Source of the DNA: Oikopleura dioica
Lineage: Eukaryota; Animalia; Chordata
Reading direction: 5' to 3'
NCBI GenBank assembly: GCA_907165135.1
Contig: OU015569.1
Coordinates: 2,108,001 to 2,172,000 of the forward strand
DNA length: 64,000 bases
The notes beneath the pieces were generated by a model. It saw nothing but the letters and a program-made list of their open reading frames with translations. It did not search any database and had not been told where the DNA came from. Shown here piece after piece: positions 191 to 62,770 of this stretch. Positions within the stretch are counted from its first letter, which is position 1. Every line of letters begins with the position of its first letter. The translations under genes were made by a program, and so were the position numbers.

Positions 191-3100
191 TTACCGTTTA
201 GCGTGGAAAGAGCGTCGTTGTTGAGATCGATTAGGAAGAAGGGACTTTCTCTCGTAAGTGGTGTCAGAATGAACTGATTCTGGTGGAGTGGAAATCAATC
301 GCCGGAGAGGACTCTTCTTTTCGCGCAGAATACCTTGATTTGGCCGAGGGAGGATAGAACAAGAGCTGTCTGATGAATTCTCCGCTTGGATGGCGATTTT
401 CTCTTCATGAACACTGAGAGATTTCGTCTTTGCCAGCCTAGCAGCAACTTTCGATGACCCGAGCCGTTTCCTCTCCATTTCTGAAAGAAAATATCAATTT
501 CAGCTCAATGCCCTGTTCAGAGCGGTGTGGGGAGATCTCATTCGTGTATAATAAAAAGAATGATTGACCAATCTAGCCAAGTTCAAAGATAAACTAAACT
601 CACCAGGATCGCCAGTCGGACTACGAGGATTCGTCGAGCCGCTGGAGCAAGAAATTTCATCCGTAAGAACATCCTCATCTGGAGAAGAGAAGTCATCCGG
701 GTCCCATCTGAAAAGTCGGATTAGTTGAAAATTATCAAATTAGATTTTCTCTGACCCTAGAATTGAGAGAGAGAGGCGGTGTATCTTGATGTCCGATTTA
801 GAGAGTCTCTTTGAAAGCCGTCCCCGTTTGAATGGGGACTGGGCAGTAAAGCACTTGAAAAGCATAGACAAAATTGTGTTCTGTCTTGTATCGGTTGGTT
901 ATTTTTTGTGAATGAGCTTGTGAATGAAGGAAAAAAATATAGCTGCCGAAGACCAAGCAGGGTGGCCCGGTGATAACGCTACTAAAAGACAGCGGGAAAA
1001 AGAGAAGTCTGACGTATTCCTCCTCTCGTATCGTTACTTCAAAGGAGTGAAAAATCCCTTGATTCTTGTATTAGTGTCTCGTTTTTATTAATAAATATGG
1101 GATAAATCTTAGCTCGTACCTGTAATATTTCGCCCATTTGATAGTGTTCTCTAAGTGAAGCTGTGCTCCAGAGAAACTGATTCTAATACCTAGCGTGCTC
1201 ATGCTTCTAACATTTGCAAGTTCTCTTTGAAATTATAAAAGTGGCTGATCGGCGAGCGATCTGACTCGCCGCTGAGCGTCAAAACTAGGCTCAGTCTGGA
1301 CTTGAACATGCCAAAAACTGTCCACAGAATAGCTTAATTTCCTTTCCTCTGACCGCACTGGAAAATGCGGCTTTAAATCTCAATTAGCGCCTACCCGCAG
1401 GAATATGCTAAGACTGATATTGAATCCTTAAATCAACGTAGTAATTTGACATAAAACTGAAACCTTTGGCAAAGAAGCAAGGCAAAATTCAGCATTTTCT
1501 CTGCTTTTCATTTGGAAGCAAATAATTCCAAATCAATGATGAGTTGGAGCTAAGTTGGAAACCAGCGCTTTTAGTGGTTACATCAGAGTCTCTCTCTTGT
1601 CAATATTTTATTTCTTTTCTTGAACCGCCTCTTTGCTCAATACTCAATAAATGCTTACCTTTCGAGTCGCTGGAGTAGATCACTACGTTCCATCGCCCGT
1701 CGGACAGCACTCAACGCCGGATCGTCTACTTGGACATCATCTAAGTCCATTTCCCCGCTTTCAGAAATTCGAGGAGTCGTGTACGAACAAAACAGTGAGT
1801 TTGGTCGAGGTCTTGGACGCGCTCTCGGTGATCGCGTTTGAACATCTTTTAATGCTTCGTACGATTTCGTTCTAGCGATATTCGATTGAAAAGATTCCAC
1901 CATCAGAGAAATCTGTGATGCAGTATCGGAAGCTGTAGGCGAAGTTGCAGACTTGAAACAATCATCGTCATCATCGTCGTTGAGGTACTCGTTGTTGTCT
2001 CCATTTTTGACCGGGGACTCTTTGATAAAAGACTTCGTATCGGATAAGCATGACGATGCAGATGTGTCTGGGCGGTCGGAGCCCTCCTCTATCGTTTCTT
2101 TGGAGATTTCTTTGACGGAGAGATTCAAGTCGATTTCTTCGTCGACGACCATTTCGTCACCGACGAGGTCGATGATGCTAATTTTTGACGACATTGACGG
2201 ATTTCGAGCCATATTAGACGCTATTGAACTTGACGTGCTGGGCTTTCGTTCTTTTTGTACAAGAACAAGGCTCTTTGGGCGAGCTCTTGTTGTAGAATCT
2301 TCGGAGAGGACAGAATTTTTGGGTGGAAGATCTGGGGGAGTTTCATTAGATGGCGACTCGATATCGATCAGTGCAGGATTAACTTGAGGATCTTCTTGGT
2401 CAACTTCTGGCACATTTCGCTTGATTTTAGGGTTACTCGCTGGAAATTGCGACGATAATTTTTAGGCACTTTTGGCGAGAATAAATTTCCAATTGACCGG
2501 CGCTCCGTTCCCGTTTGCGTTTGCTCTTTTTCAGTAGCGACTGGTTTTTCAGGCTTGATGTCGAGCTGTGGTTTCGAAACTTTCATTTGCTTCCGTCCAA
2601 ATTTAGGCGACATTTGTGAAAGCTTCGAGAAAGTCGAAGCGATTTTTGACTTTCCATCTCCCTTTGAAGGAGCAGTTTTAGGACTTGTAGGAAGGTTCTT
2701 TGTAGGTGGTTCAGGAGATTTATCGCTTGTAGATGTGCTTCTTTGAGGTAATGGCGGCGGCTCGACTTTCTTCGTCGCCGTTTCTTGAGGTCGCGCATCA
2801 GATTCTTTCAGAGTTTTCGGTTTCCTTAGATTGGACGGCCTGGTTGAGCTCGATTGCGAAAGTCTTCGTACGATTTGCTGGGAGGAAGTTGATGCTGGGG
2901 CAGGTGCAGCTGGGGCTACCCTACTCTCTGATTTGGAGGCGGAGACGTAAGGCAGTCGGGTCCCATGGGGCACTTCGGAGGCAGCTTTGGCAGTTGGGCT
3001 TTTGATTCCTGTTTTGAAAGTTGGTGGCCTAATACGCGATGAAGACATAGAAGAGGACTCGGTTGATAATCTTGAAGAAGTCGTCATCATTTCTGTTGTC

Positions 3101-4183
3101 TCCTTCTTCATTCTTGTTGATTTCAGGGGGAGGGAGGTAGGTTTTTGGATTTGACTTGTGCGAGCAGTTTGTTTTGCAGGCGTTTGCTTTTCAGGCAACT
3201 TGGGTGGCACTGGTTCAGCAGGGTCTACTGATAACTTTGAAGTTGTGCGCTGCGGCGGAGCTGGCGCGGTCTTTGGGCGGACCAGCCCCTTTGTTGACTT
3301 TGTCAGTTTTGAGGGAGTAGAGCAAGTCGAACTTTTACTCGTACCGACTGCAGATCGTCTCGGTGGTTTAGATGCATTTGTCGATGCTACCGAGGATGCG
3401 CGGGATGAGTTGGAGGCAGATCGCGGTCTCGGAGGCTTCTTTTCTATTTTCTCTCGCATCTCCGGCTCTAAAAAGATGATAAAAAACGAATGCAAAAAAT
3501 AAGGAATCTACCTAAGTTAAAGCGTACTCTACTCATTTGAGGGAATATTGCGATTCCAAGTTCAATTACGCGTCCATAATTTTAATCTATGGCGCACTAG
3601 GGAATTCCTACTCGATGATTACTCGTCATTAAAAGTAGTTCACCGCAAAATGGAGTCCAGTGGATTCTCTACGAATACAAATATGGTATCTGTAAATCAT
3701 TGCCTCCTTTTTCGGCGGGGTTTAACATGTTCTCAGATCTTCTGAGACATTAAAGATTTACGGATACTATCTGAGCAATTATTGATCTCAATCATGAGGC
3801 CAATGGTCGTGTGCCTAACTACGAGCCCTGCCCTCTAACGTAAATGAGATGTTGGGTTCATAGGCGGGAGGAATTAGACAAAACCAGCCACTTATCCGTA
3901 TCGATTTAACTCGACCAACATCTGGCCTTCCAAAACTCTCCTGATAACTAACTGATCCTCCAGTAAGATCGTGACAGAAGCTGACCACCCAGTCAAGCTT
4001 ATTCGAGCGATAATATGGATGGAACTTACCGCTGGGAGTTGTCGGTGTCTTGCTCGGTCGCTGGAAGCCAAAGCCGGACTTTGGATTAGCCTTTGGCTGC
4101 CCAACTTTGGATTCGCTAGCTGCACCTCTGTCGGGAGTACTTTTTACGGCACTGGGGAGATTTCGCTTTGGTAGTCGACTCAT
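191..4183 (-). CDS. Multi-exon gene for a large Ser/Thr/Pro/Lys-rich, probably disordered protein of unknown family
   Basis: ATG at 4183 (MSRLPKRN) follows a tttag acceptor. The first exon ends at a GTAAG donor near 4029. A long exon pair (ORFs 2368-3495 and 1655-2413) can be joined by a 50-nt GA-AG intron at 2440-2489, and there is a GTAAG donor at 1658. A small exon at 604-707 (WDPDDFSSPDED, GTGAG donor) precedes the last exon at 191-480, which follows a tttctttcag acceptor. Exons between 708 and 1650 are unresolved. Confidence 0.6.
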
Positions 4184-7032
4184 CGTCCTAAATAGCATTT
4201 GTTATGACAAGATCTTGAGTTATTAATCAATTTCCAAAACATGAGCACTTGAACGCATATTCTGCCACTGGAGTGTTTTGGCAAGCGCTCAAATCTAGTA
4301 CCGGGCAGCGACTCACGAGGAATACTCGAACATGGAAATGCCGCTGCTCAACAAAGAGAAACATTTTCGTTGAATACTCAGAATTAACGAGTGAAATTGT
4401 GTCAATTGTTGAAATTATATTTGAAAATAGACTTTAATATGTAATACTCACGCATCAATCTCTCCTAGAATAAGATCTACTTCAATAAAAAACTGTTCGT
4501 CTGCCAAGTTATCTCTCATCGCTTCAGAAATTCGAAAATCAGCGAAAAAAGCGAAGAGTGTTTTTTGAGTTTGCTCCCAACTGTGTGCCCAGATTTTGGG
4601 CTGTAATTAATCCCGCTTATAGCAGATCGATGCGGGAGTGTTTTCAATTCCATCCCGCTACAATATCCTTAATCAGCTGGAGCTGCTCGCCTTGAAAGGC
4701 TCGAGCGCTTTGGGCACACAGGCCACGCTCGCATGGGCTCATTCGAGTCCCTTGGGAAGACCTTCAAGGGATTCCTAAATGTCAGGACCGACGGGTCGCA
4801 TTGAATTTCGAGATTAATTTTTAATGCGCTCAATACCGAAAAATCGTATGCACGCTACGGTACTGGAAAGTCTTTTTAGTTTTTTACTTACAGTGATTTT
4901 CTGCTTGTTGGTATCTGTGGCGGTTTTATTTTTGTGATCGCTTGTTCTTTTCGTGTCTCTCGTGGCTAAATGAACCAAAATTAGATGTCAGCTTTGCCCC
5001 TGTGTGCCCGATAGGAAGATAGCCTCTTCCTTGATCTCATTGAAAAATAAAAATATTTTGGGCCCTTATCGCGGTGTCGTACTCGAGTCATAGCTGGTCC
5101 AGAGTTATCCAGAGTGGCCGACATTGCCTTCGTCAAAAGATCACAGTCCGTGAAACAACTACCTTTTGTCCCCAAGTGTGTTTGCGTTCGTGTACATATC
5201 CGGCCGCTCAACTAGAATGAGCACTTTCAATTACTTTATTTACCAGAACTCAAGTACTCTTCACAATTAAAGACAAGCTCCAACTACCGGCACGGTCACT
5301 GTTTGATGACTGTATATTTTTCACATACAATTTTTCTAAGTAAAAGTAAACCACTCTTTTATGTTAATAAACGGAAGTTAATTGTATTACCAAGAAAAGA
5401 TTCATTTTCTCGAGTGGCCACTTGTGCAAGAAAGCGTTGAAATTAGGGTTTAGCGAGGGTGAGCACCTGGAGAAAACGCTAGAATAGGAGCGAATGGAAC
5501 GTCCGAAGGTACTTGTGATCAACCAGGTCGAATTACAATGAGTGACTTCCGGCTGCGCGAGTGTAATCATGAGAATAAATTTAGAAATAAATGACTTTTA
5601 CAAAGAATCAAAATATCGAATAGCGGATGCTCTTTGTCAAAAGCATTTATCAGAATCGAGAATTGGAAAATTCCGAAATTCCTTGTTTGGCATTTCTTGG
5701 ACTAGGCGTGAGATTATCGTGCTGAGGCCTTTATCAACTGACCGCAATTGATGTGAGCTCGACCGCGAGAATGGGCGCAGGTTGGCTGCGTTCCTACTTT
5801 TTGCTCACTTTTGAAGAAATTTTAGGATTTCACGCGCCGTCGCGGTGAATTCGCCAAGGCAGTGCTCTTTGATGGTCCTGACTGGGATCACTTCTATCCG
5901 TTTCCGGATTATCCCGCGCAAAGAAAATAATAGGCAGAGGCGAAGGTAAGAACCATGAAAGAGCCGAAAAAGACTCTTGAGATCGAGGAAAAAATGACCA
6001 GGGCGAAAAACTCTCTGGAAATAATCAACTAGTTCTAACCTGTTGCTCAGTTCGAGGCTTCGCATTCTCTTTTTCTTCTTTGTATCGGGATAGGTTGTAG
6101 CAAAAAGCGAGGACTGCGTCTAAGTCACCGTCCAAAATTCCTAAATTTTCATTTTGAATATTCTCCGATCCCTTTATTTTCCTGCCTTCGAGTCCATCTG
6201 TTCGACATTGGATTTTTGAATATTTTAACACATTTTTGGAGACTCTTGTAGGGCCCTTATAAGGAAAATTATCGATTCGCGTGAAAAAAAAAACCGGACA
6301 GATTGGGCCCGGAAGAAATTCGCTGCGTTGAAATAGGTCAATAGCCGAAATTTTGATAGCAAATGAAGCTAATTTAGTATCGACGCGGCTCAGAGCGCAA
6401 CACATGGCGTCTTTGATCCCTCTAAGCGAGGCAGACGGCTTCTCAAAATGAGAAATTGCATAGAGGGTTTTTAGTTATTCTCGAGTACTTCGTTCTGTCA
6501 CGACCGTAAAACCTACTTTCTTTATTTGCTGGTGGTAAATAGAAAGCGTTCAAGATTTTCAATTTCGTCCAGTTAATCGCAATGAATTGAGTTTCAAAAA
6601 AAAAGTTGACAGGTATGGGCTTGTGTTTTGATCTAAGCGAGCAGGATGATCTCGGCTCTGTTGCTTCTCGCCAGCTGAGTTTTTAGTAAATTGGAAAACT
6701 CTGAGAGCGCACGGCAGCTGACTCGTCTAGATTATCCCGCACCGCCGAACATGAAAACGAGAAATCCCCATTCTGTGCCAAAAAAATAGCAACACTCCGT
6801 ACGCCGACTTTCCTTATCCAATAAAACACCTAAAATATGGAAATCAAATCTCCACCGTCTTAGGTTTTCTATTTTGGCTTCGGATCAAACGGAGGAAAAT
6901 GAATTCCCAGTACTCCATGATTACGGCTTTGCTTCTAGGGCGAGTTAAAGGGTGTGGTTCCTCATGGAATGTCAATTAGAGGCGCGAAAGAAATAGTTTT
7001 GCCTTCTTTGAAATCAACCTTCTTGAGCTAAT

Positions 7033-7617
7033 GGCCAATTTCAATAAGGAGTTGAGATTCGAAATCCTAGCACCCCCCTTTCTTGTGCTCATTAGAAAGA
7101 GCGCAAAAAGTTACGCTAGAAAATAGTACTTTTAGAGGATGAATCCCCGAAAATGACGTCACGATGACTCATTGAAGTTCCAAAAGTCCAAAACTTTGCC
7201 ACGCTCTCATTTTTTTTCTAGAAATGGAAAATTTGAGTTCGATACAGGAAAATGATCGTCTTGAGCCACTCTACCTGAAGAGCTACATATAAAAGATCCA
7301 ACTCAAGAAAACTCTAGAACTAAAACTAGAAAATTTTTTTTTCTAGAGGTGGATCTTTCAAATGTAGCTCTTCAGGTAGAGTGGCTCAAGACGATCATTT
7401 TCCTGTATCGAACTCAAATTTTCCATTTCTAGAAAAAAAATGAGAGCGTGGCAAAGTTTTGGACTTTTGGAACTTCAATGAGTCATCGTGACGTCATTTT
7501 CGGGGATTCATCCTCTAAAAGTACTATTTTCTAGCGTAACTTTTTGCGCTCTTTCTAATGAGCACAAGAAAGGGGGGTGCTAGGATTTCGAATCTCAACT
7601 CCTTATTGAAATTGGCC
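7033..7617. mobile_element. 585-bp foldback/MITE with 256-bp perfect inverted arms and AAT target-site duplication
   Basis: 7033-7288 is the reverse complement of 7362-7617, checked block by block. Termini are GGCC...GGCC, with AAT at 7030-7032 and 7618-7620. There is no coding capacity. Confidence 0.92.
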
Positions 7618-10600
7618 AATCCAAACCCTTCAAATTTGGGATTTTCCCATCTGGATAAAAATGGTTTCTATTTTATTAAAATTGTAAACGCACGAAGATA
7701 AAAATAGCTTAGCATTAGGTTGCTGCTTGAGAAGTTCCCAAAGTCCCTTGTGGAAATACAAACTAACCTTGTTGACCTTTCAACTTCCCATGCACGTCTC
7801 TAATAATAGAATCTTCTTTTCTTTAGGCTCTTATTATTGTTTTACCCTGTTGTGGTCAAAACGGGGGGGTTGTTTAGGCGAAAGTTTGTTTCAAAATTTT
7901 CGAAAAGGCGCCATGTTCGAACTTACTCTGCAAAAAAGGACGGTGCGCGTAGAGGGCGCTGCTGCGTCCGAGTAACCCGACGATGACTCATTCCTCCACC
8001 GCCGCCAGTCACCATGACGGGCTGCACTACTACGAGCATGCTCATCACTCGTGTCAACCCTTTTTCTTACTCATTGTGGATGATTCTAGTAGGCTAATCA
8101 TTCAGTTCATGCAAAGAATTAGTTTACATATTCTTACATAAAAAGAATCATAATCTCAGAATTATTAAATTGAGTGCATTTTGATCGGCAGTGATTTTCG
8201 AGACAGCTCAGACTGATCATTCAAGAATCCCCGTTCGCGCTGCTGATTTACGAGGCCTCGAAAAGGTGGAATGTGCTTGTTAAATATTCCGATTTTTGGA
8301 GGGACTCGTCGGACAGCGCCGAACAAGAACAAAAACATTTGGGCAATACATTAATCATCAGATGCATTAATAGACACCCCGCTGTCTGCCAGAATCAATA
8401 CTGATTAGCAGTAATTAAGTAATCCTTAGTAGAAAATGAAATATTCAAGTGATTTGTGGTCCGATGCACGGACAACAAAGCTCTTAGCCATATTTGTACG
8501 GATAGGTGTCTACAGCTTTGCCGAAGCGCATTTTATGCACTGAGGCGGATTTGACAGAGTCATCTGGTGGCACTTGGTGCTCGAAAATGCGCGCCACCAG
8601 TGGTATCAGACAATGTCACCTGCTGCGAGGAGCGATAAATAAAGTCAAACCGACCGGTGCCTGGCCCCTGGCCAATAAGAGCACTCTTCAGCCCTTTATT
8701 CAAGAAGTGGATTATAACATGAAACAGCGACTCTGTTCACTAAATGGCAAGCCACTTAGATCCTTCGATTTTGCTCTTGAAAGTCGTGGGATATTTTCTA
8801 AGCGGTAGATCTACGCGGTTTCAAAGCTCCCCCAAATGGAATTATTTATTCATTTCTAAGCGGTCTAATTTGAATGTTCTGTGATTTGCGGATGGGATAT
8901 ATGATTCTTTCATTCGCTAATTAGGATCTTCCATCATCATAGTTGTCATTGATTATTGTTAGAACACGCGCGAGGCTTGATAAACGACTTAGGAAGTGCC
9001 CAGTTGGCACGGGTCTTTCAATACCAAATAAGCACCCACAAAGTTGAATAAATACCCCGATCCAGTGAAAACTTGAGGGACTCTGAGCGATGATTATCCG
9101 GATATAACATTGATTCAATAATTTGCATACCGTTTGGTGAGCAGTCAGCAAGGTCGCATCCGCGCTCGCTCAGCTGTTTCAAAACTGCGCGCACGTGATC
9201 CTCCGATGTTTCGTCGAGTTTACGGCGCGGTCGCTCCCCAGCTGATTCAAGGTTAGCGTGTGCATAAAATGCAAAAAAAGGAACCCGGAGAAAGTTAGTT
9301 TCGACCTACTTGTCAAATAGACGAGCTCGTCTAAGATGTCTAAATTGGAGAGGTCCACTCTTATGTCAGAGACGCGTCCAGACAGCTGTTCTTGAGCCCA
9401 GCTCGTGTAAATCTTAATAAAATCCGTCATCGGAGGAAAATGTATTTGTCCAGTGATCGCACACTGCCTTCTCTCTGTTGGACGAAACTTGTCCGTAAAC
9501 AATGAGCAAGGGATGATGGATCAGAGGAGCCGACTCATTCAAATATTTGTCGGAAGAAGAGGGAGGGATCAGCCTTAGACCACCCCCTACCGCAAGATCG
9601 ATTGCAGTTTCACCACAGGATCCGCCTTACTGTAAAAACTTGTGACCCCATGTGGGCCCATTTTAAACCTTTTTTATAGCCCGACATTTTCACAAGTAGT
9701 TTGATTTTAGTCTTGCGGGAAATTTACCTGTAGCATTCTCATGTTGTTCCTCTGTAGCATAAACTTCATTATCTTCTGTCTTCTCTCCCGTTCGCCATAA
9801 TCTCTAACTAAAAACAAGTGTTTTGTCGCTGTCCATGCTGAAAATGGGGAAAATAGCAAAGTGCATGTGTATCATGTCACGTGTTAGCTTTTGTTGCATA
9901 TTAGTGTGTTGATGCCAAGGATCGAATATTTAAATTTGGTTATTGCCAATAACTAACTGTTTAGGATGACCTTTGGGAAGCGCAAGTAAAGAAAAATTGG
10001 GCAAAGCAGGGGCCTTAGGGGAGGAAGAAAATCAAATTTCGTCCTTGGCTCGTGCTCGGATCACAAGCGCCGAGCATCTGGCGGATAAGCCCACTTTAGT
10101 TTTGATTATCTTTAACTTCAGATTCTGAGCTCTGCTCACAGGTGCGCATCTTTGACTCGCTGCAATTGTCTTCTGACAAGGCCGCGATCGTCAGGAGACA
10201 GCTCATTACAATCACTGCAATAAAATGCACCAGCTAAACCTATTAAATCTTGCAACGAAGATCAACAAAACCCAACTCCTTTCAAGCGTTGAAAGCTCTG
10301 AAATGAGCATCTTCTCCCTGGATATTCTGTGACTTACCAAGTCCGAGAAACAGTCGCTATTTTCAAATTTCTTCGGGCTAATTATTCTTCTGGCATATCT
10401 CTATTTTACTTCCGGTATCTCTCATTCAAAAGTCGCTTATCAGTTTGGATCTTTTCGTATTCCGGGAAGCGAAAAAGTAAAGTCGACAGTGGCACAGTCG
10501 TGTTTTCCCGCGACGTGAGCGCCACCCGCGCGCACTCCGAAAAGGGTTTAGCAGCGCTTTTCACAATTTCTGGAGCGTTTTTGAACCCTCCTTTTGTGTG

Positions 10601-36400: not shown

Positions 36401-37221
36401 ATTGAGTCGATGAGATCGTCAACGCTTTTTTGGAAAATTATCTTTCATTTCTATATTTTAGGATACAACTTTACAAATAGGGATGTCGAGCACAATGGCC
36501 CGACCTACTCCCGCATGAGGGCGCAGGGTGCGCGGAGGACTCTGAGTCCTCCGAACTACGCGAGTCCAGGGAGAACTGATGAGTTGGCGGTAAACCCTAA
36601 ATACGCTAAGCGAGCGTAACACCTGGGAGTGAGGGCAGCAGGGGCGGGCGGGATATTTTTGTTCTACCCATGCTAGTATCAATTCTAGAGGCGAATAGGA
36701 GTGATGGCTTTGTTTCTATGGGACTTATATATATCAGAAGAAAGCTCTTCGCACACAGAACATGGATTTTACGGAATTAAAAGACAAAGTTAATGGTATT
36801 CCTAAAGATGGGGGAACCAAAGATAAACCTATCATTTTTCACATCGGCAAAACCAGAAAGCTACGCTTTTTATCTGCAGTAAGGAGAGAAGATTGAAGGA
36901 AAATACCAGAGGTTCCGGATGCGAATAAGGCACTTTCTCCTCTTTTACTTTTCCTGTAACTTCCCACTAATTTTCCACAAGTAGGTGTTTTTGACTCTTT
37001 ATTTAGATTCAGCGCAAAATTTCACTCTAGAAAAGTCTTCCTTGTTTATAAATAGCTTCATAAAAATGTGCGCGAAAAATCACTCTAGTGAAATTTAGCT
37101 CCTAAGGGGGGTACTACGCCGTCAGAACTGATGGCGGTGTTTGAACAGAGATTGACACACTTCACGCTGGGATTAGGCGGCTTCGCGCTCCCTTCCTTAC
37201 TTGCTCACCCGCTGAGTAATT

Positions 37222-37793
37222 CGGGTGCGCGTCGTTTGCTACGGTTTGGGGGGTTTGCGTATATTTCTACGATGCGTATATTTCTACGGTGCGTATATTT
37301 CTACGGTCAAAAATGAATCATAGGGACCGTAGCAATTGACGCACAGTTTAGGGTGGGCAAAAAGCCGGGTCGGTTTTGTCGGTTATTAATAAATTAAAAG
37401 AATTTAAAGCTATCTAAGTCGGTCGGAACGAGTGTCTGGCCGGTTTTCCCTTAAAAAAAGATGAAATTCATCATGAATAAGTATCATACTTTGACAATGC
37501 TTATTCCACCAAGGTTTAAAATTATTTTCCTTCATATTGTTTTCATTTTTGTAAGGGAAAACCGACCAGACACTCGTTCCGACCGACTTAGATAGGCTAG
37601 ATAGCTTTAAATTCTTTTAATTCTATTAATAACCGACAAAACCGACCCGGCTTTTTGCCCACCCTAAACTGTGCGTCAATTGCTACGGTCCCTATGACTC
37701 ATTTTTGACCGTAGAAATATACGCACCGTAGAAATATACGCATCGTAGAAATATACGCAAACCCCCCAAACCGTAGCAAACGACGCGCACCCG
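37222..37793. mobile_element. 572-bp foldback/MITE with about 245-bp near-perfect inverted arms
   Basis: Termini CGGGTGCGCG / CGCGCACCCG. TSD AGTAATT at 37215-37221 and 37794-37800 (8 bp with the overlapping G). Each arm has a 17-bp unit GCGTATATTTCTACG(A/G)T three times. The arms differ by a few substitutions and small indels. Confidence 0.93.
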
Positions 37794-37967
37794 AGTAATT
37801 CATGGAGGTTCTCCTCTACGCTCCTCTGCGCACTCTCCTCCGGCGCCATGCTCAGAGCGCTCTTCAACCTCTTTTCCGCTCTTCCACCTCTTTTTCGCGC
37901 GCCCTCTTGCGGATGGAGGTCGGGCCATTATGCTTTTACCCCACAAATAGGCTTTATTCACGCTCAT

Positions 37968-39898: not shown

Positions 39899-40179
39899 CG
39901 TTTATCGAGAAAAATTTCGAAGGCGAATCTTTTTAAAAATGGGATTGGTCGCCGATCATACAGATAATGAAACCAATATAGATTTAATAACGATAAGGAC
40001 TTCACTGGCAGTTTTCTTGTTTACAGGAATGAATTTATTGAGCGTATATCGTTATAAAACTTCATATTTGATGCAGTAGACTAAGACATGTCAGCTTCTT
40101 ATCTACTCTGTAATTAATTACAGTTTGTTCGTCCGACTGAAAGCATGATATAATATCATTGATATTTTTTAGAATCTAT

Positions 40180-42570
40180 GATTTGCTTACGATATCGAAG
40201 GTGAGTGGCGAAAAAAGATCGTCTTCGTCGTTTAGAGAGAACTTCTTGCTGATCACGTGAATTTTGTATTCCATCGTTTCTTCATCAATGTTCTCGTCAG
40301 CGGCGAATATGAACAAGCCCTTTTACTGCTCAATTCTTTACGTCTTTCGATCAATAAAAGGCTGTAGCTTGAGCGGTTTCCTTTGAAATTAGGCAGTTTA
40401 TATGAGCACCAGGTATAGCTACATGTTCGACAATGTCAGTTCCGTCGACGGTGGATGAGAAAATGGTGTCACCACCTTCGGCCCAATACAGCTTTTCTTC
40501 TTTATCGTCAAATGCCATGGCACTTGTTTCATAAAATGTTGTATTCTTGAAAAGAGGTCTATCCATATTTATTTTGTTTTCTTTTTGAAAAGAATTGAAA
40601 TGGCCATATTCAAAGTTTACAGTTCAATTCTCTTGGCTTTTCCTGTAATGTTGTTCTGATAGAAGCTTCCTCGAAAAGAAACGAGAACTTGAGAGCTTGT
40701 AACTGAGAGGGATTCCCAAGGAAGACCAATGATAGGATGAGCAAGGGCAATGGAAGGCCTCCGATCTAACTCAAGATTGATGCTTCCGATAACAGAAATA
40801 AGCTGCTCTGTCTTGAGAATAAACCAGATATAGTCTCGAGAAATAGATAAGTCAATGATTTCGCTTTGGTCGCTGATCAAGAAAAAGTTTTCTTTTACCG
40901 AAAAACTCTCGTTTTCGGGCGATAAGGAGTGAAAGTGGACGACGGAAGAATTCTTTGTCTAGTTGCACAAAAAATAATCAACTTTTCTCGCTAAAAAATG
41001 TGTAACTCTTCCTTGACTCCATAAATTAGAAATTTTCTTTTGTCGTCTATCACAAATGTTGTTACTTGGCCTTCAACCAGGGTGGAACGTTGGGACCGGG
41101 CAAGTCGGGCAAACCGGGCAAAAAATCGGGCGGGCGTGCAAATCGGGCGGCGTAGGGCTCGATTTTACGAGGTAAAAATCGGGCAAAGTCGGGCAATCGG
41201 GCAAAAATCGGCGCCCGGAAAAAGTCGGCGTCCGGATGAAAAAATGGCATCTTATGGGACATTAATACTGAAATTTTCTTTAAAAACGTCCGGTTTCGGT
41301 TCTCCATGAGTGCCCTTCTTCTTTCGAGATACAAAATAATCCTTCCTCTTCAATAAATTTACATATTTTTTGGTTTTGGGGTTGCCGAAATTTCCGGGCA
41401 AAAGTCGGCACCCGGGCAAATCGGGCGGGCAAAAAGTCGGGCGGCCATCGGGCGGCGCCGACAAAAAAAAATTTAATCGGGCGGGCAATCGGGCGGCCAA
41501 ATTCAAATATTTTGCCCCAACGTTCCACCCTGCTTCAACAGATGCTAGAATAGGAATCGAGGACAGCTCTTGTTTCAAGTGCACTTCTGGATTGACACTT
41601 ATTTCGTAAAATACTGTCTTATCCGTTGTTTGATTGTAGCCATCGTAGACGAGTTTGACTCCATCATCGCAGACGGTAATATCGCAACTTTCCCACCTTC
41701 TTTCGGGATCTGTTGTGTAGCACCAGGCTCCTCGCAAGTCCAAATGAAGGTTCACATGATTGCGTCGTGAGTTTGTTCTATAATAAAGCCTACTAATTGT
41801 AAGAAGCATAGAAGCAAATCTGAGAAAAGAGAATGAACCCAATCTAAATCCGGATTTCTGCAGAAGTTGTGATCATTTGGAGGCTGCGGCACTGCTTTTG
41901 GCACGTGAGGAAATGTTTCATTCCATTTCTGACAAGTTCGTCCAGAGAAAGTTTGAGAGAGCGTTCCATTATAAGTGAGACTCGTATTGTGAGGCCAGCA
42001 TGTCTTCTCTTGAAACACCGTCTTCCATGTGATTTGAAAGCCCTCGCCGCTTTCTGATCCGTCGGTGAAAAATAGCATTCCAATTTTAATGAATCCTTCA
42101 CTGTTAGCTTCGAATGTGAAAGAAGTAGAATTGCCTCTGCAAAGTGTTTTTATGTTCGACACACTTCCGTAGTTAGATACTTCGAAAATGCTCAGTGAAT
42201 CCCATAGACATGGAAGATCGTTCTGCTATTCGTTGCAAAATAAAAGTAAGTTATTACTTTTGAATCCTACTTCTGAAAACAATCGTTCTTCGCCCAGTTT
42301 CAAGTAATCCACTCGCAGATGAACCCTTTTAGGGATAGTCGTTCCGACTGAAGTGGGCTTATGAAGCGTTTTTTAAACATGAGAGACCAACGTTATTCTC
42401 GTTAATCAAACACTTTCCTGAAGATGCCATCGACAGTTGATGCTGCTTTCGTAAATGTCTCCAAATGCTTCTCGGGAAGAAAGTAAGCCTCTAGCCACAC
42501 GAAAGGTTTCGCCACAAAGACTTTGGACACTAGAAACTAAGAAAAACTTAAAAAGGTGCATCATGCCCAT
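40180..42570 (-). CDS. Secreted CUB + kringle + YWTD-like beta-propeller protein, multi-exon
   Basis: Signal-like start MGMMHLFKFFLVSSVQSLCG; CUB (CGETF...NCRWHL...CLWDSL...FFTDGSESGEGFQITW); kringle (YNGTLSQTFSGRTCQKW, NFCRNPD, AWCYTTDPERRWESCDI); propeller-like exons (MAFDDKEEKLYWAE). The 3' end is approximate. Confidence 0.8.
41078..41532. mobile_element. 455-bp MITE inserted in an exon of the CUB-kringle gene (candidate introner)
   Basis: 17-bp TIR CAGGGTGGAACGTTGGG. 7-bp TSD CTTCAAC at 41071-41077 and 41533-41539. Dense AA(A/G)TCGGGC subterminal repeats. Confidence 0.93.
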
Positions 42571-58694: not shown

Positions 58695-60423
58695 GAGCAA
58701 TAAACCTTCTCTTTTAAACTTTCCGCTCTCGCCTTTTTAATCCATTGTTTATTTTTTTTATCAGAACTTGATCTCGAAATCAAGTCTGGGCGAAAATCGT
58801 TGATTCTTTTCTGAACCTATCCCGCTCGTAAAAATGCTTTTAGTAGGAAACAGAAAGTGACAGAAGAAGAAGCAGAAAGTGATAATACATTGATTGAGGG
58901 CGGAGATTAGCCAAAGCGGGTATTATTTTCGGACAGCGCTTCAAGCTGGGAAGATGAACTTTTCGCGTCATTTTTTCGCGGATCCTCACCCCCTGTGAAA
59001 TCTAGCAACAGTTTCACAAGCAACGTTTTTTTGATGTTTGGCGGAATTCAATCGATCCGACGTCATTCGCCGTTTATCCTATATTTTCCATCGATTAACA
59101 GCAAAATGGCGATTAATAATTTTCGCGGGCTCAATACTTTTTTCTCCCTTCTTTCAATCTAGGTACCGGGCAAAATATAAGCAAGTGGCTTTGTCCCACG
59201 GCAATGGAGCTGGGATTCGATTTCGTAAATTTTCTCGTCATTGCCAAAATTGAAAAGGATTGATGGATGATTTTATTCTTGAGATTTGCTCGAATCGCAT
59301 TAGGTTTTTTTTTCAGCGCAAGTCATTTTTGTCAATTGCAATTTCGCTTATTGGATGTTTTATGCTTGAATGCGCTGTCAAGAAGGTATTCCTGTTTTCG
59401 ACAGTTTGGGAGGCTGTTACGTTGGCTTCGTAGGCTAAAGTTAAAATGGGCATTGGATTTGGTAGTTATCGGAGAACGAGTAGAGAGATCGACTCGGTTG
59501 GGATTGGTTGAGGAGCGCCTCCCGACCCATCTGGCTGCTATTTTTGCTCATATGGTCTAACCACCACGCTGAGAATATAACTCGCTTTTGTACAGGAAGG
59601 AAGTTACAGAGAGGACGAAGATCGACAACCGAAAAAGAAATTCATAAAAATCCAAAGCAAGTAAGTCTGATATTCGATCATCCCAGTCACCCCACACACC
59701 ATTAAATATTCATTTTTTTTTGGGGAAAGGTGATTTTGCTTTTGTTGTTGGCAAAAACAGAAAATGGCCATTTTGTTTCGAGAATTTATTATTATTTTTG
59801 GGGAATCTTGAGCGGAAGAAGGAAAGCCTTGATCGTATCGTTTTTGTCGTGTTTTTGGGGAGTCAAGGTCGCCCATGGATGGATAATCCCAAGGGAGCCC
59901 ATTTCAAGGTGAAGTCAACTTCAGCCCTCGCCCGGCCAGAATTGTCTTTTTAAAAGGTACAGCTTTCGCGTTACTCAGTGAATAGACCTTGCAAATCGAT
60001 CTGCAAATAGCTTAGCTCCATTTCAAACTTAAGTTTATCTATATCTTTGCTTGAGAAGCTCCTTTCCATCAATCCCTTTTTTTTAATTATTTTTTTTTCA
60101 TAAATTTGAATAGTTTTATGTTATTCGAAAAATTTTACGAGTTTTCCCTTTGAAAGGGCGTCAAAATCTGGAGATTATTGAAAATGTTTTATTCCAAGAG
60201 GATGACAGTGAGGACGTGACGTGCCCTGTTTCTCAAAGCTGCAATACACTTTACTGCAGTTCGTAGCTGGCACAAATATAAAACTAAACCCGACTTATCC
60301 ACAATTCGCCCAAAGTACGGATGCCGATCAATTTTCAGTACAAGCTCACGCATCCCCGTAAAAGGGCACTGGTAAGGTTCGCTCTGGAACAGGCGCCCCA
60401 ACTGATAAAATAAAAACAATTAA

Positions 60424-60573
60424 GGGTGTCCCCAACGATCGAGTTTGACTGTTCTTAGTCGGGTGACCAAACTATTTTTAAGGAAGCTGCCTTAACCGAA
60501 AAGCCTTCAGTAAGTCCTATAAAAATTAGCTCAAAGTATAGCCTGTTTAAAAAAAAAATCGTTGGGGACACCC
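60424..60573. mobile_element. 150-bp MITE with TTAA target-site duplication (Kolobok-like termini)
   Basis: 15-bp TIR GGGTGTCCCCAACGA / TCGTTGGGGACACCC, with TTAA at 60420-60423 and 60574-60577. Purine-start termini fit Kolobok better than piggyBac, which starts CCC. Confidence 0.85.
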
Positions 60574-62770
60574 TTAAAGCGAGAGTTTTTATTTAGTAGA
60601 GATTATCGCTCATTAGTATCGATTTCTTATACCTAATGATTTCAAGGTTGTCTTGTTTAAAAAAACTACTCGTTTTGTGATAATTTCAGATTTTTGTGTC
60701 TCTTTTTTTGGAAGTGTTGGTTTTTAAACTGTCGATTGAATTGATAAGTGAAGGAGAATAGTGACAGGTGAAGGTACTTAGGCGTACTGGTTCTTTGGAG
60801 AGCCTGGGCGCCGTTGAAATATTCATCTCTTGACAACAGATCAGAATGCTCTGCTTTCTTGATGACACTAGTTGGATGCACCCCTGAACGCTTTCGCTTT
60901 ACTAAATAGAGCTCAGAGAGGGATAAGCGTCGAACAGATAGATACAATTTTTTCTATTATATTGCCAATTCTATATCTGGCTAGGGCGAGCGAGGCAATG
61001 ATCTTCTTTTTTTCACAGCCAAAGAAATCGAGAAAGTAAAATGACTCTTTTTCTGGAATAATTTATCCGTAGCGTTTCAAACGCAGCCGCACAGCACACA
61101 CACTGCATGATTCGCAAAAAGGATGATAAAGATTAGCCAAGCTGAGTAGAGAAATCTTGTTCAGAAAAAAAAAGGTGGAATCGAATTGAGAATGACCGTC
61201 CTGGCGTGCAATTTGAGATATCCCCAAATGAGATATCCTTGTAGTTCGATTTTCTGCAACAACTTGCGGGAATTTAATGATCGCTACTTTTTAATCAATT
61301 TTGTTTCTTTTTCATCTTGGCGGGTTTCTTCCTTGATTCCAAGGTTTTCTCTTTTCGAGCGCTCGGGAAATATTCGCGAATATTTTGAATGATTAGAACA
61401 TCGCTAAATTATAGATGCGGACTAGGAATAATACGCTAGAATATTCAAATATTTGAGCGAAGAACTTGACTCGCCGCACGGGCTCAAGAACTGTTGATTA
61501 TTTATCAGATCTTTCTTCTCTCAAACTCAAAGGAAAATTCTGAGAGAGAAGGACGAAGGCCAACTAAAATGTGAAAAAGAACGGTTTCATATTTAATTGG
61601 ATTGAGGTCTCTGGGAGGATGTTTGGGATAAGGGCATTTAATGAAGGAAATGGCCGAAGAGATCAAGTGCGGTCTTTAGGGTGGGTTAGGCACACGCTTT
61701 TGGGTTCATTTATCGCTAATTGCCCCAGGCGCATGGGCATGTTCTTAATTTGCCTTAAATTCGATTCCATGTTTTACAATATCTGATGATGCGTGATGCG
61801 CCATCTAGGGCGTCGTTTATTATCCATTCAACGATGGCGGCGGAATTTGGGCACACTTATCAAACTTGCTAGAGCTTCTCACAACACCATCGAAAAGCAT
61901 GGAAACAGAGAATCCCATAACATAGAGCGAATTCCTCAGCACAAACTAACAGAATGCCGACGCGCATTCAAGAGCTCCACGAGCCCACGGCTTTGGCCAA
62001 ATCTAGAACATTCCCGTTCTATGAGTCCGACTTGCTTGTGGATGAGGTGTGCATGGAAAATGATTTTTTTTTCATAACTGAACGTGTTCAGTTTGAGCCG
62101 GCCAAGATAAAATTATGATCGCCAATTACCTTTTGAAGCAAAAATTAAAGAGTTCAGAACTTTTCTTATAATGAAACATATCAGTGGACTTATTCTAGTT
62201 TATATGATTATAGAGAAAGCATTATTTATTAGACTTAAAAGCCTACAGAAAGAATTAAATAGTGGAGAATATATTAAATACTTACTGAAACAAATAAATG
62301 CTTTATTTCAAAATTTAATGTTTAAAATTTGTTAAGATGGAAGGAAACAACAGCGACCGATTTATTGTGAAGACGACAAGCCTGGAACTGTAAGTATTTG
62401 TCATTGTGTGGAAAAATGATTAGGAAAAAATAACTTGGGATTATTCTGTAGTTTCGAGAAGGACGGGTCGATCGCACTGAGTGACCATAATTGCATTCTT
62501 GCGGATTTCTTAATTTATCCAAAAATCTATAATCACTTGTTTTATCTGACGGTCGCCGAGTAATCATTTATCCTCATTTTCCAGCTCGATGGATTTAAAA
62601 GCATTCTGAAAAAAGGTGCAGTAGCAAAGCCGCTCGCAAGAGTGAAAATTAAAGTCAAATTAAAAACAGAACAGCGTCGCAGTCTGTGGCAGACAGAACT
62701 TTCAAGGCATAAACATTGGTTAAGTAATAGATTAGGCAGAAACTTCGGCTGCCTGAATAAGCAATTCAAG

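Follow-up and report, generated by a model that had tools for sequence, protein, structure and literature searches.

Can a transposon that has landed in a coding exon be removed from the pre-mRNA as a newborn intron? The question is raised by an element of 455 bp at positions 41078–41532 (minus strand) of the window, by which we mean the whole stretch of Oikopleura dioica DNA that was analysed (64,000 nucleotides). The original prediction held that this element lies in an exon and is spliced out by a GG-AG route, with the donor taken from its TIR and the acceptor from its TSD. The insertion in the exon is confirmed as real, young and polymorphic, and the locus is plausibly a candidate nascent intron.

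Structurally, the insertion is a MITE-like non-autonomous DNA transposon. Its TIRs are perfect over 17 nt, reading in gene sense CAGGGTGGAACGTTGGG at the upstream end (41516–41532, minus strand) and ...CCCAACGTTCCACCCTG at the downstream end (41078–41094, minus strand), the second being the exact reverse complement of the first. The only two matches to CAGGGTGGAACGTTGGG in the 64-kb window are these two ends (0.03 expected), and the window holds a single copy of the family. The upstream TIR carries two candidate donors, CAG/GG (41529) and CAGG/GT (41528), where the slash marks the splice junction. On both sides lies the 7-bp TSD GTTGAAG, identified by repeat search and by the joint of an empty site described below: copy 1 (41533–41539, minus strand) encodes V-E-(G), and copy 2 (41071–41077, minus strand) ends in the AG that would act as the acceptor.

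The minus strand reads ...GCA TCT GTT GAA G, followed by CAGGGTGG...CCACCCTG and then by GTTGAAG GC CAA GTA. In the host frame, ...ILASVE leads into CAGGGTGGAACGTTGGG, and after CCCAACGTTCCACCCTG and the repeated GTTGAAG the frame resumes as GQVTTFVIDDKRKF. The element and one TSD together measure 462 nt (3 × 154). In-frame stops are present in the host frame, in keeping with the original claim that the element contains a stop, and the unspliced allele would therefore encode a protein truncated after the kringle. No transposase-sized ORF is found in the 455 bp, in which the ORFs are only of low complexity. Many short subterminal repeats of the form GCCCG(A/G)(T/C)T occur inside the element, in opposite orientation at its two ends, an arrangement seen in many MITEs.

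Two sequences without the element reveal the state of the site before insertion. The first comes from X6, a DNA run under a different organism label, whose contigs we compared with the window. A 3861-nt X6 contig, at the depth of the flanks, joins 41070 to 41533 and so skips exactly 462 nt, with seven ambiguous letters at the joint, which identifies an empty site with a single GTTGAAG. The second is L001, a marine metagenome contig reached through protein P0007 (the ORF of an exon in a divergent relative); in this divergent orthologue the site reads ILAKINGRVTAF, equal in length to ILASVEGQVTTF. Alleles or orthologues lacking the element had been expected to encode SVEGQ (from a pre-insertion SVEGQVTTF), and both the X6 contig and L001 uphold that pre-insertion structure. 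The exact empty site, the 17-nt TIRs and the 7-bp GTTGAAG likewise bear out the description of a transposon with TIRs and a TSD in an exon.

Window and X6 differ by 114 substitutions over ~3.3 kb. That rate matches the 3.6% heterozygosity published for the male behind the Okinawan O. dioica reference (PMC8008620), and we therefore read the insertion as a population-scale presence/absence polymorphism and not as a fixed species difference. Present on the assembled haplotype and absent both from a ~3% divergent haplotype and from a sister lineage, it is a young, recent insertion into coding exon 4 and is probably still polymorphic. A short way upstream of the host gene, at window ~42859, the X6 contig has ~516 extra letters (2458 to 2975 of the record); these may be another insertion polymorphism, with the presence pattern reversed.

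The element belongs to a larger family. Summed X6 word depth is ~53 on the flanks compared with ~800–2400 over the element (15–45 times, which is a rough sign of copy number only). In other X6 contigs the match to the window stops precisely at 41078 and at 41532 and gives way to unrelated sequence, and a second copy in X6 is flanked on both sides by ATTTCTC, a 7-bp TSD of its own. Taken together, these observations show a multi-copy family with a 7-bp TSD, the other X6 copies of which were seen as short contig pieces only. The boundaries of the window copy are given by the empty site and by the loose ends of these other copies. With TIRs, a TSD that has a matching empty site, and a small, non-coding and multi-copy body, the element has the features of a MITE.

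Its superfamily is less readily named. Like hAT-type MITEs, the element has subterminal short repeats and a CAGGG terminus, which fits the YARNG start, but in the window copy and in the ATTTCTC-flanked X6 copy alike the TSD measures 7 bp, whereas that of hAT elements is typically 8 bp. We rejected hAT membership on this TSD length. A metagenome scan for the TIR gave five single-end matches, of which four lie in high-G+C contigs and are attributed to chance. The fifth (L006, positions 3089–3120; contig OHME01000140.1, 62.8 kb, 45% G+C) is a solo 38-nt terminus, ~82% identical to the MITE end, with no second TIR near it. Possibly it is what remains of a kindred element in some other marine eukaryote.

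The interrupted gene (40077–42570, minus strand) is conserved and receptor-like and encodes a signal peptide, a CUB-like N-terminus, a kringle and a YWTD-like region in at least eight exons colinear with L001. Exon 4 (41012–41740, minus strand), which holds the element, encodes the C-terminal half of the kringle, a linker and the start of the propeller region; the two kringle halves fall in exons 3 and 4 (Pfam), and the YWTD-like motif LYWAEGG occurs in the downstream exons. Among the full-length homologues retrieved, an LRP4-like protein of Styela is the nearest. The L001 contig runs colinearly with window 42659–40078 at ~70% nucleotide identity. Across 503 aligned codons, pN is 0.19 and pS 0.73, giving a dN/dS of ~0.075 (with dS saturated), and the three exonic differences visible between the host gene and X6 are all synonymous. 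On both comparisons the gene is functional and constrained, and by the codon-level measure it is under strong purifying selection.

Splice sites that depart from GT-AG are well documented in this species. Non-canonical introns account for 11% of the Okinawan annotation (PMC8008620), GV-AG introns are a recognised tunicate class (PMC13326754, section 21), and the GA-AG donors of O. dioica have a conserved upstream AG and an A at +3 (PMC7072748). An exonic AG before the candidate donor therefore matters here. In the host gene itself, what is conserved between window and L001 suggests GA-AG introns whose donors read AAG/GAA (40320–40380 and ~40950–41011, minus strand): one follows exon 4 in both lineages, where the donor would read AAG/GAAGAG, and in the window another follows exon 6. 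The acceptors predicted in the gene are mostly AAG/, and GTTGAAG/ fits them. At the intron of 40320–40380, L001 has AAG/GCA, or a GT two codons further.

To describe the choices open to the spliceosome, we combined 13 donors that start with G and 2 AG acceptors, all lying no more than ~25 nt from an end of the element, into 26 pairs. Six of these G..AG pairs are in frame and free of stops, as chance gives, so that an in-frame GG-AG solution is not statistically special; we rejected it as evidence of splicing. The enumeration does return the proposed GG...AG segment of 459 nt at 41071–41529 (minus strand), a hypothetical intron whose removal would leave CAG and yield SVEAGQVTTF, with one added Ala. 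This pair alone among the 26 has an exonic AG preceding the donor (GCAG/GG). Written out as GCAG/GGTGG...GTTGAAG/GCC, the candidate shares the G at +1, the 3′ AG and the upstream exonic AG with the GV-AG (GA-, GC- and GG-AG) introns of O. dioica (Denoeud et al. 2010; PMC7072748; PMC8008620). It departs from the published GA-AG logo in having T and not A at +3, and a canonical GT one nucleotide downstream (CAGG/GT, 41528) competes with it and would shift the frame (PMC7072748 for the logo).

The canonical donors fare no better. Those at 41539, 41528 and 41521 all shift the frame with either acceptor, and GT-AG removal of 458 nt would give the frameshifted junction GAAGCAGG/GCC. Nor would the candidate be seamless: the TIR donor and the TSD acceptor would remove 459 of the 462 nt, and 3 nt would remain. 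The sole G..AG pair that removes 462 nt gives SVEAGLTTF, and none takes out exactly 462 nt while bringing the pre-insertion sequence back. Both the MFE and the centroid fold place the donor and the 3′ end inside a G+C-rich stem of 17 bp. This counts against the proposed junction, as does the C/G-rich 3′ region of the element, unlike the A/T-rich short introns of the host gene. A splice-site matrix built de novo from ORF-bridging candidates in the window was dropped for want of a length peak and for its many false pairs. On sequence grounds, given the exonic AG/G and the AAG/ acceptor, a GG-AG junction is possible.

A MITE with 17-nt perfect TIRs, a 7-bp TSD and a hAT-like CAGGG terminus inserted recently into exon 4 of this CUB–kringle–propeller gene. 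We propose that the allele would be tolerated through spliceosomal removal of the element from the pre-mRNA with the frame kept, in which case the element would be a nascent intron. Of the single junctions, the likeliest would take the TIR CAG/G for its G(V) donor, a non-canonical one, and would end at the AG that closes the second TSD copy. In that event 459 nt would go out and CAG would stay, giving SVE-A-GQV across the junction GAAGCAG/GCC; the second possibility would be a non-GT route that takes out the full 462 nt exactly. The geometry has a general consequence. With the donor at TIR offset 3 and the acceptor closing a 7-bp TSD, exactly 3 nt always stay behind, so any copy whose sense-strand TSD ends in AG would stay in frame, whatever the codon phase. 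We put frame-preserving removal of any kind only just short of an even chance, a judgement in which the presence of other lineage-specific intervening sequences in the host gene counted for splicing. The exact GG-AG junction that was originally proposed is, taken singly, unlikely.

The insertion may instead be a plain loss-of-function or hypomorphic allele, that is, a rare, young and deleterious MITE caught on one assembled haplotype, and we give this a substantial, though less than even, chance. Retention of the element would truncate the protein after ~94 junk residues at an in-frame stop, and use of the GT donor at 41528 would shift the frame. Such an allele would resemble any ordinary polymorphic exonic TE insertion in its presence/absence polymorphism and in the in-frame stops inside the element. 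A rare deleterious allele is also expected to be missing from a haplotype at within-population divergence, and the ~3% divergent haplotype, compared with the 3.6% heterozygosity of the reference animal (PMC8008620), lacks the insertion; this counted against splicing. All three GT donors frameshift, and the TIR stem buries the splice sites. What sets this locus apart from an ordinary null allele is the strong constraint on the host gene: with a dN/dS of 0.075, a null should be rare.

Searches for products of the gene bear on the same choice, and the failure to recover a gene model or transcript agrees with a null allele. A representative search and an exon word search for a gene model or transcript-derived protein found only P0007, and two profile searches (each combining a full-length homologue with the exon pieces) returned their seed proteins only; being insensitive, with few alignment columns that became profile positions, they carry no weight on whether a gene model exists. 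The RNA runs X12–X14 (poly(A), same species label) placed no reads on 3.8 kb, the whole gene included, at 90% likeness, and the presence of the organism in these runs is shown by no other stretch; their lineage may be too divergent for read placement, as sister lineages are only ~70% identical, judging from L001, and the zero count is no sign that the gene is silent. None of the RNA runs listed is shown to hold the host gene. A scan of the metagenome for an empty or spliced junction with 0–12 extra letters gave no matches.

Exact removal of the element and one TSD (462 nt, with CA..AG ends or any of eight equivalent registers) would restore SVEGQ with no scar and give an uninterrupted GTTGAAGGCC junction. 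It would involve GT-independent splicing helped by TIR pairing that draws the ends to one another, a mode comparable to that of Fritillaria or of the non-conventional introns of euglenids. We consider it quite improbable: the introns of O. dioica are reported to be overwhelmingly GT-AG or GV-AG (PMC13326754, PMC8008620), and the product would be indistinguishable from transcripts of the empty allele. In its favour, the TIR stem closes the element, and the host gene contains an intron that may have arisen in a comparable way.

That intron splits the kringle (window ~41741–41845, minus strand; L001 counterpart ~2303–2366). The DLRGAW segment just downstream of it shows three synonymous and no non-synonymous changes between window and L001 and is, by that pattern, clearly coding. 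A kringle-consistent product, CRNPD-x-DLRGAW, needs an intron of 104 nt in the window and of 64 nt in L001. In L001 no AG-ending solution keeps WCYTTDP in frame, and in the window there is no GT-AG in-frame solution. At homologous offsets, the options for its ends are TA..TT and CA..TT, AG..TT in both, or GA..TG and GG..TC. The 3′ end repeats the last ~10 letters of the upstream exon, the intron holds an inverted repeat, GGTTCA and TGAACC, and insertion-like direct and inverted repeats of this kind are present at the ends in both lineages. At this position, the related ORFs on other tunicate-like contigs are not split by an intron.

The kringle-splitting intron may derive from an old insertion and use neither GT nor AG; if that is real, exact removal of the 462 nt becomes a serious alternative to the GG-AG junction. 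Oikopleura of the window lineage might then excise fresh MITEs precisely, as element plus one TSD, without GT or AG and through pairing of the ends, an idea to which we assign a low probability. It would mean Fritillaria-like non-canonical splicing in a laboratory species, with the kringle-splitting intron as an older product and 41078–41532 as a new one still segregating. An assembly or somatic artefact, absent from the germline of the sequenced animal, is hardly credible, as clean TIRs and an exact 7-bp TSD matching the empty site are the signature of transposition and not of misassembly, and the DNA runs X1–X3 hold 82–91% of the sampled words of a 3-kb stretch.

The lineages differ in other introns of the gene as well. 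A predicted 45-nt GT-AG intron lies between host exons 2 and 3 in the window (42226–42270, minus strand), where the coding sequence of L001 is continuous; from the alignment, this is a case of intron presence/absence between lineages. L001 has its own intervening sequence of ~111–117 nt inside exon 3 (~1903–2019), absent from the window. A GT-AG pair would remove it in frame with two additional residues (DSTDGSFVF versus NSTSFTF).

The preferred reading, a nascent intron with a TIR donor and a TSD acceptor, has published precedent in its layout. In the IE1 introner of Micromonas, the element supplies the 5′ gt or gc and the TSD supplies the 3′ ag, according to Fig. 2 of PMC11282704 (after Huff et al. 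2016). As that article summarises them, the introners of Micromonas pusilla and Aureococcus (Huff, Zilberman and Roy 2016) are, like the element described here, small DNA transposons of the non-autonomous kind that carry TIRs and a TSD and lie in coding sequence; in them the element can give the 5′ site and the TSD the 3′ AG, the arrangement proposed for our candidate. They differ in being spliced and seamless and in numbering hundreds to thousands per genome, with GT or GC donors. Here, one exonic copy is known, from its sequence, the candidate donor is GG, and the GN-AG solution leaves 3 nt.

The original prediction had presented the layout as the opposite design to that of another exonic element in the window (20647/20655–21147; TIR CTAGGATCGACAA, 8-bp TSD GCGATGAT). 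There, TSD and element measure 501 nt and could go exactly as a GC-AG intron, with the TSD as GC donor and the TIR as AG acceptor. The two families are indeed unrelated, and the contrast between a TSD donor with a TIR acceptor and the reverse is correct. The layout is not a new route, being the published Micromonas introner design (PMC11282704, Fig. 2).

A second comparison lies within the larvaceans. In Fritillaria borealis, MITEs have given rise to introns with non-canonical ends (Henriet et al. 2019; PMC13326754). These resemble the present case in being lineage-specific intervening sequences with TIR and TSD features and non-GT donors. They have AG-AC and AG-AT ends in a genome with duplicated U2AF paralogues and 95% non-canonical introns, whereas ~88–89% of Oikopleura introns are reported to be GT-AG and the rest mostly GV-AG. 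Table 1 of PMC3443670, citing Denoeud et al. 2010, places Oikopleura among the species with indirect evidence of intron gain by transposon insertion, and a survey of introners across eukaryotes makes no mention of tunicates.

If the element is spliced, the birth of a chordate intron would have been caught in the act, with filled and empty alleles still segregating and the transposon family identifiable. The junction would differ from the empty allele by 3 nt and could be scored, and the locus would offer a concrete mechanism for the fast intron turnover of Oikopleura in a culturable species. If it is not, the locus is an ordinary deleterious insertion polymorphism. Its present value is that of a well-characterised test locus for intron birth, not of a demonstrated phenomenon.

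The window contains further palindromic or TIR-bounded elements, at 7032–7618, 37213–37802, 36489–37934 and 60420–60577. The features recorded for them are arms of 280 nt with 99% complementarity, arms of 196 nt with 94%, two 36-nt TIRs separated by 1.4 kb, and an element of 158 bp whose perfect 20-nt TIRs begin with TTAAGGG.
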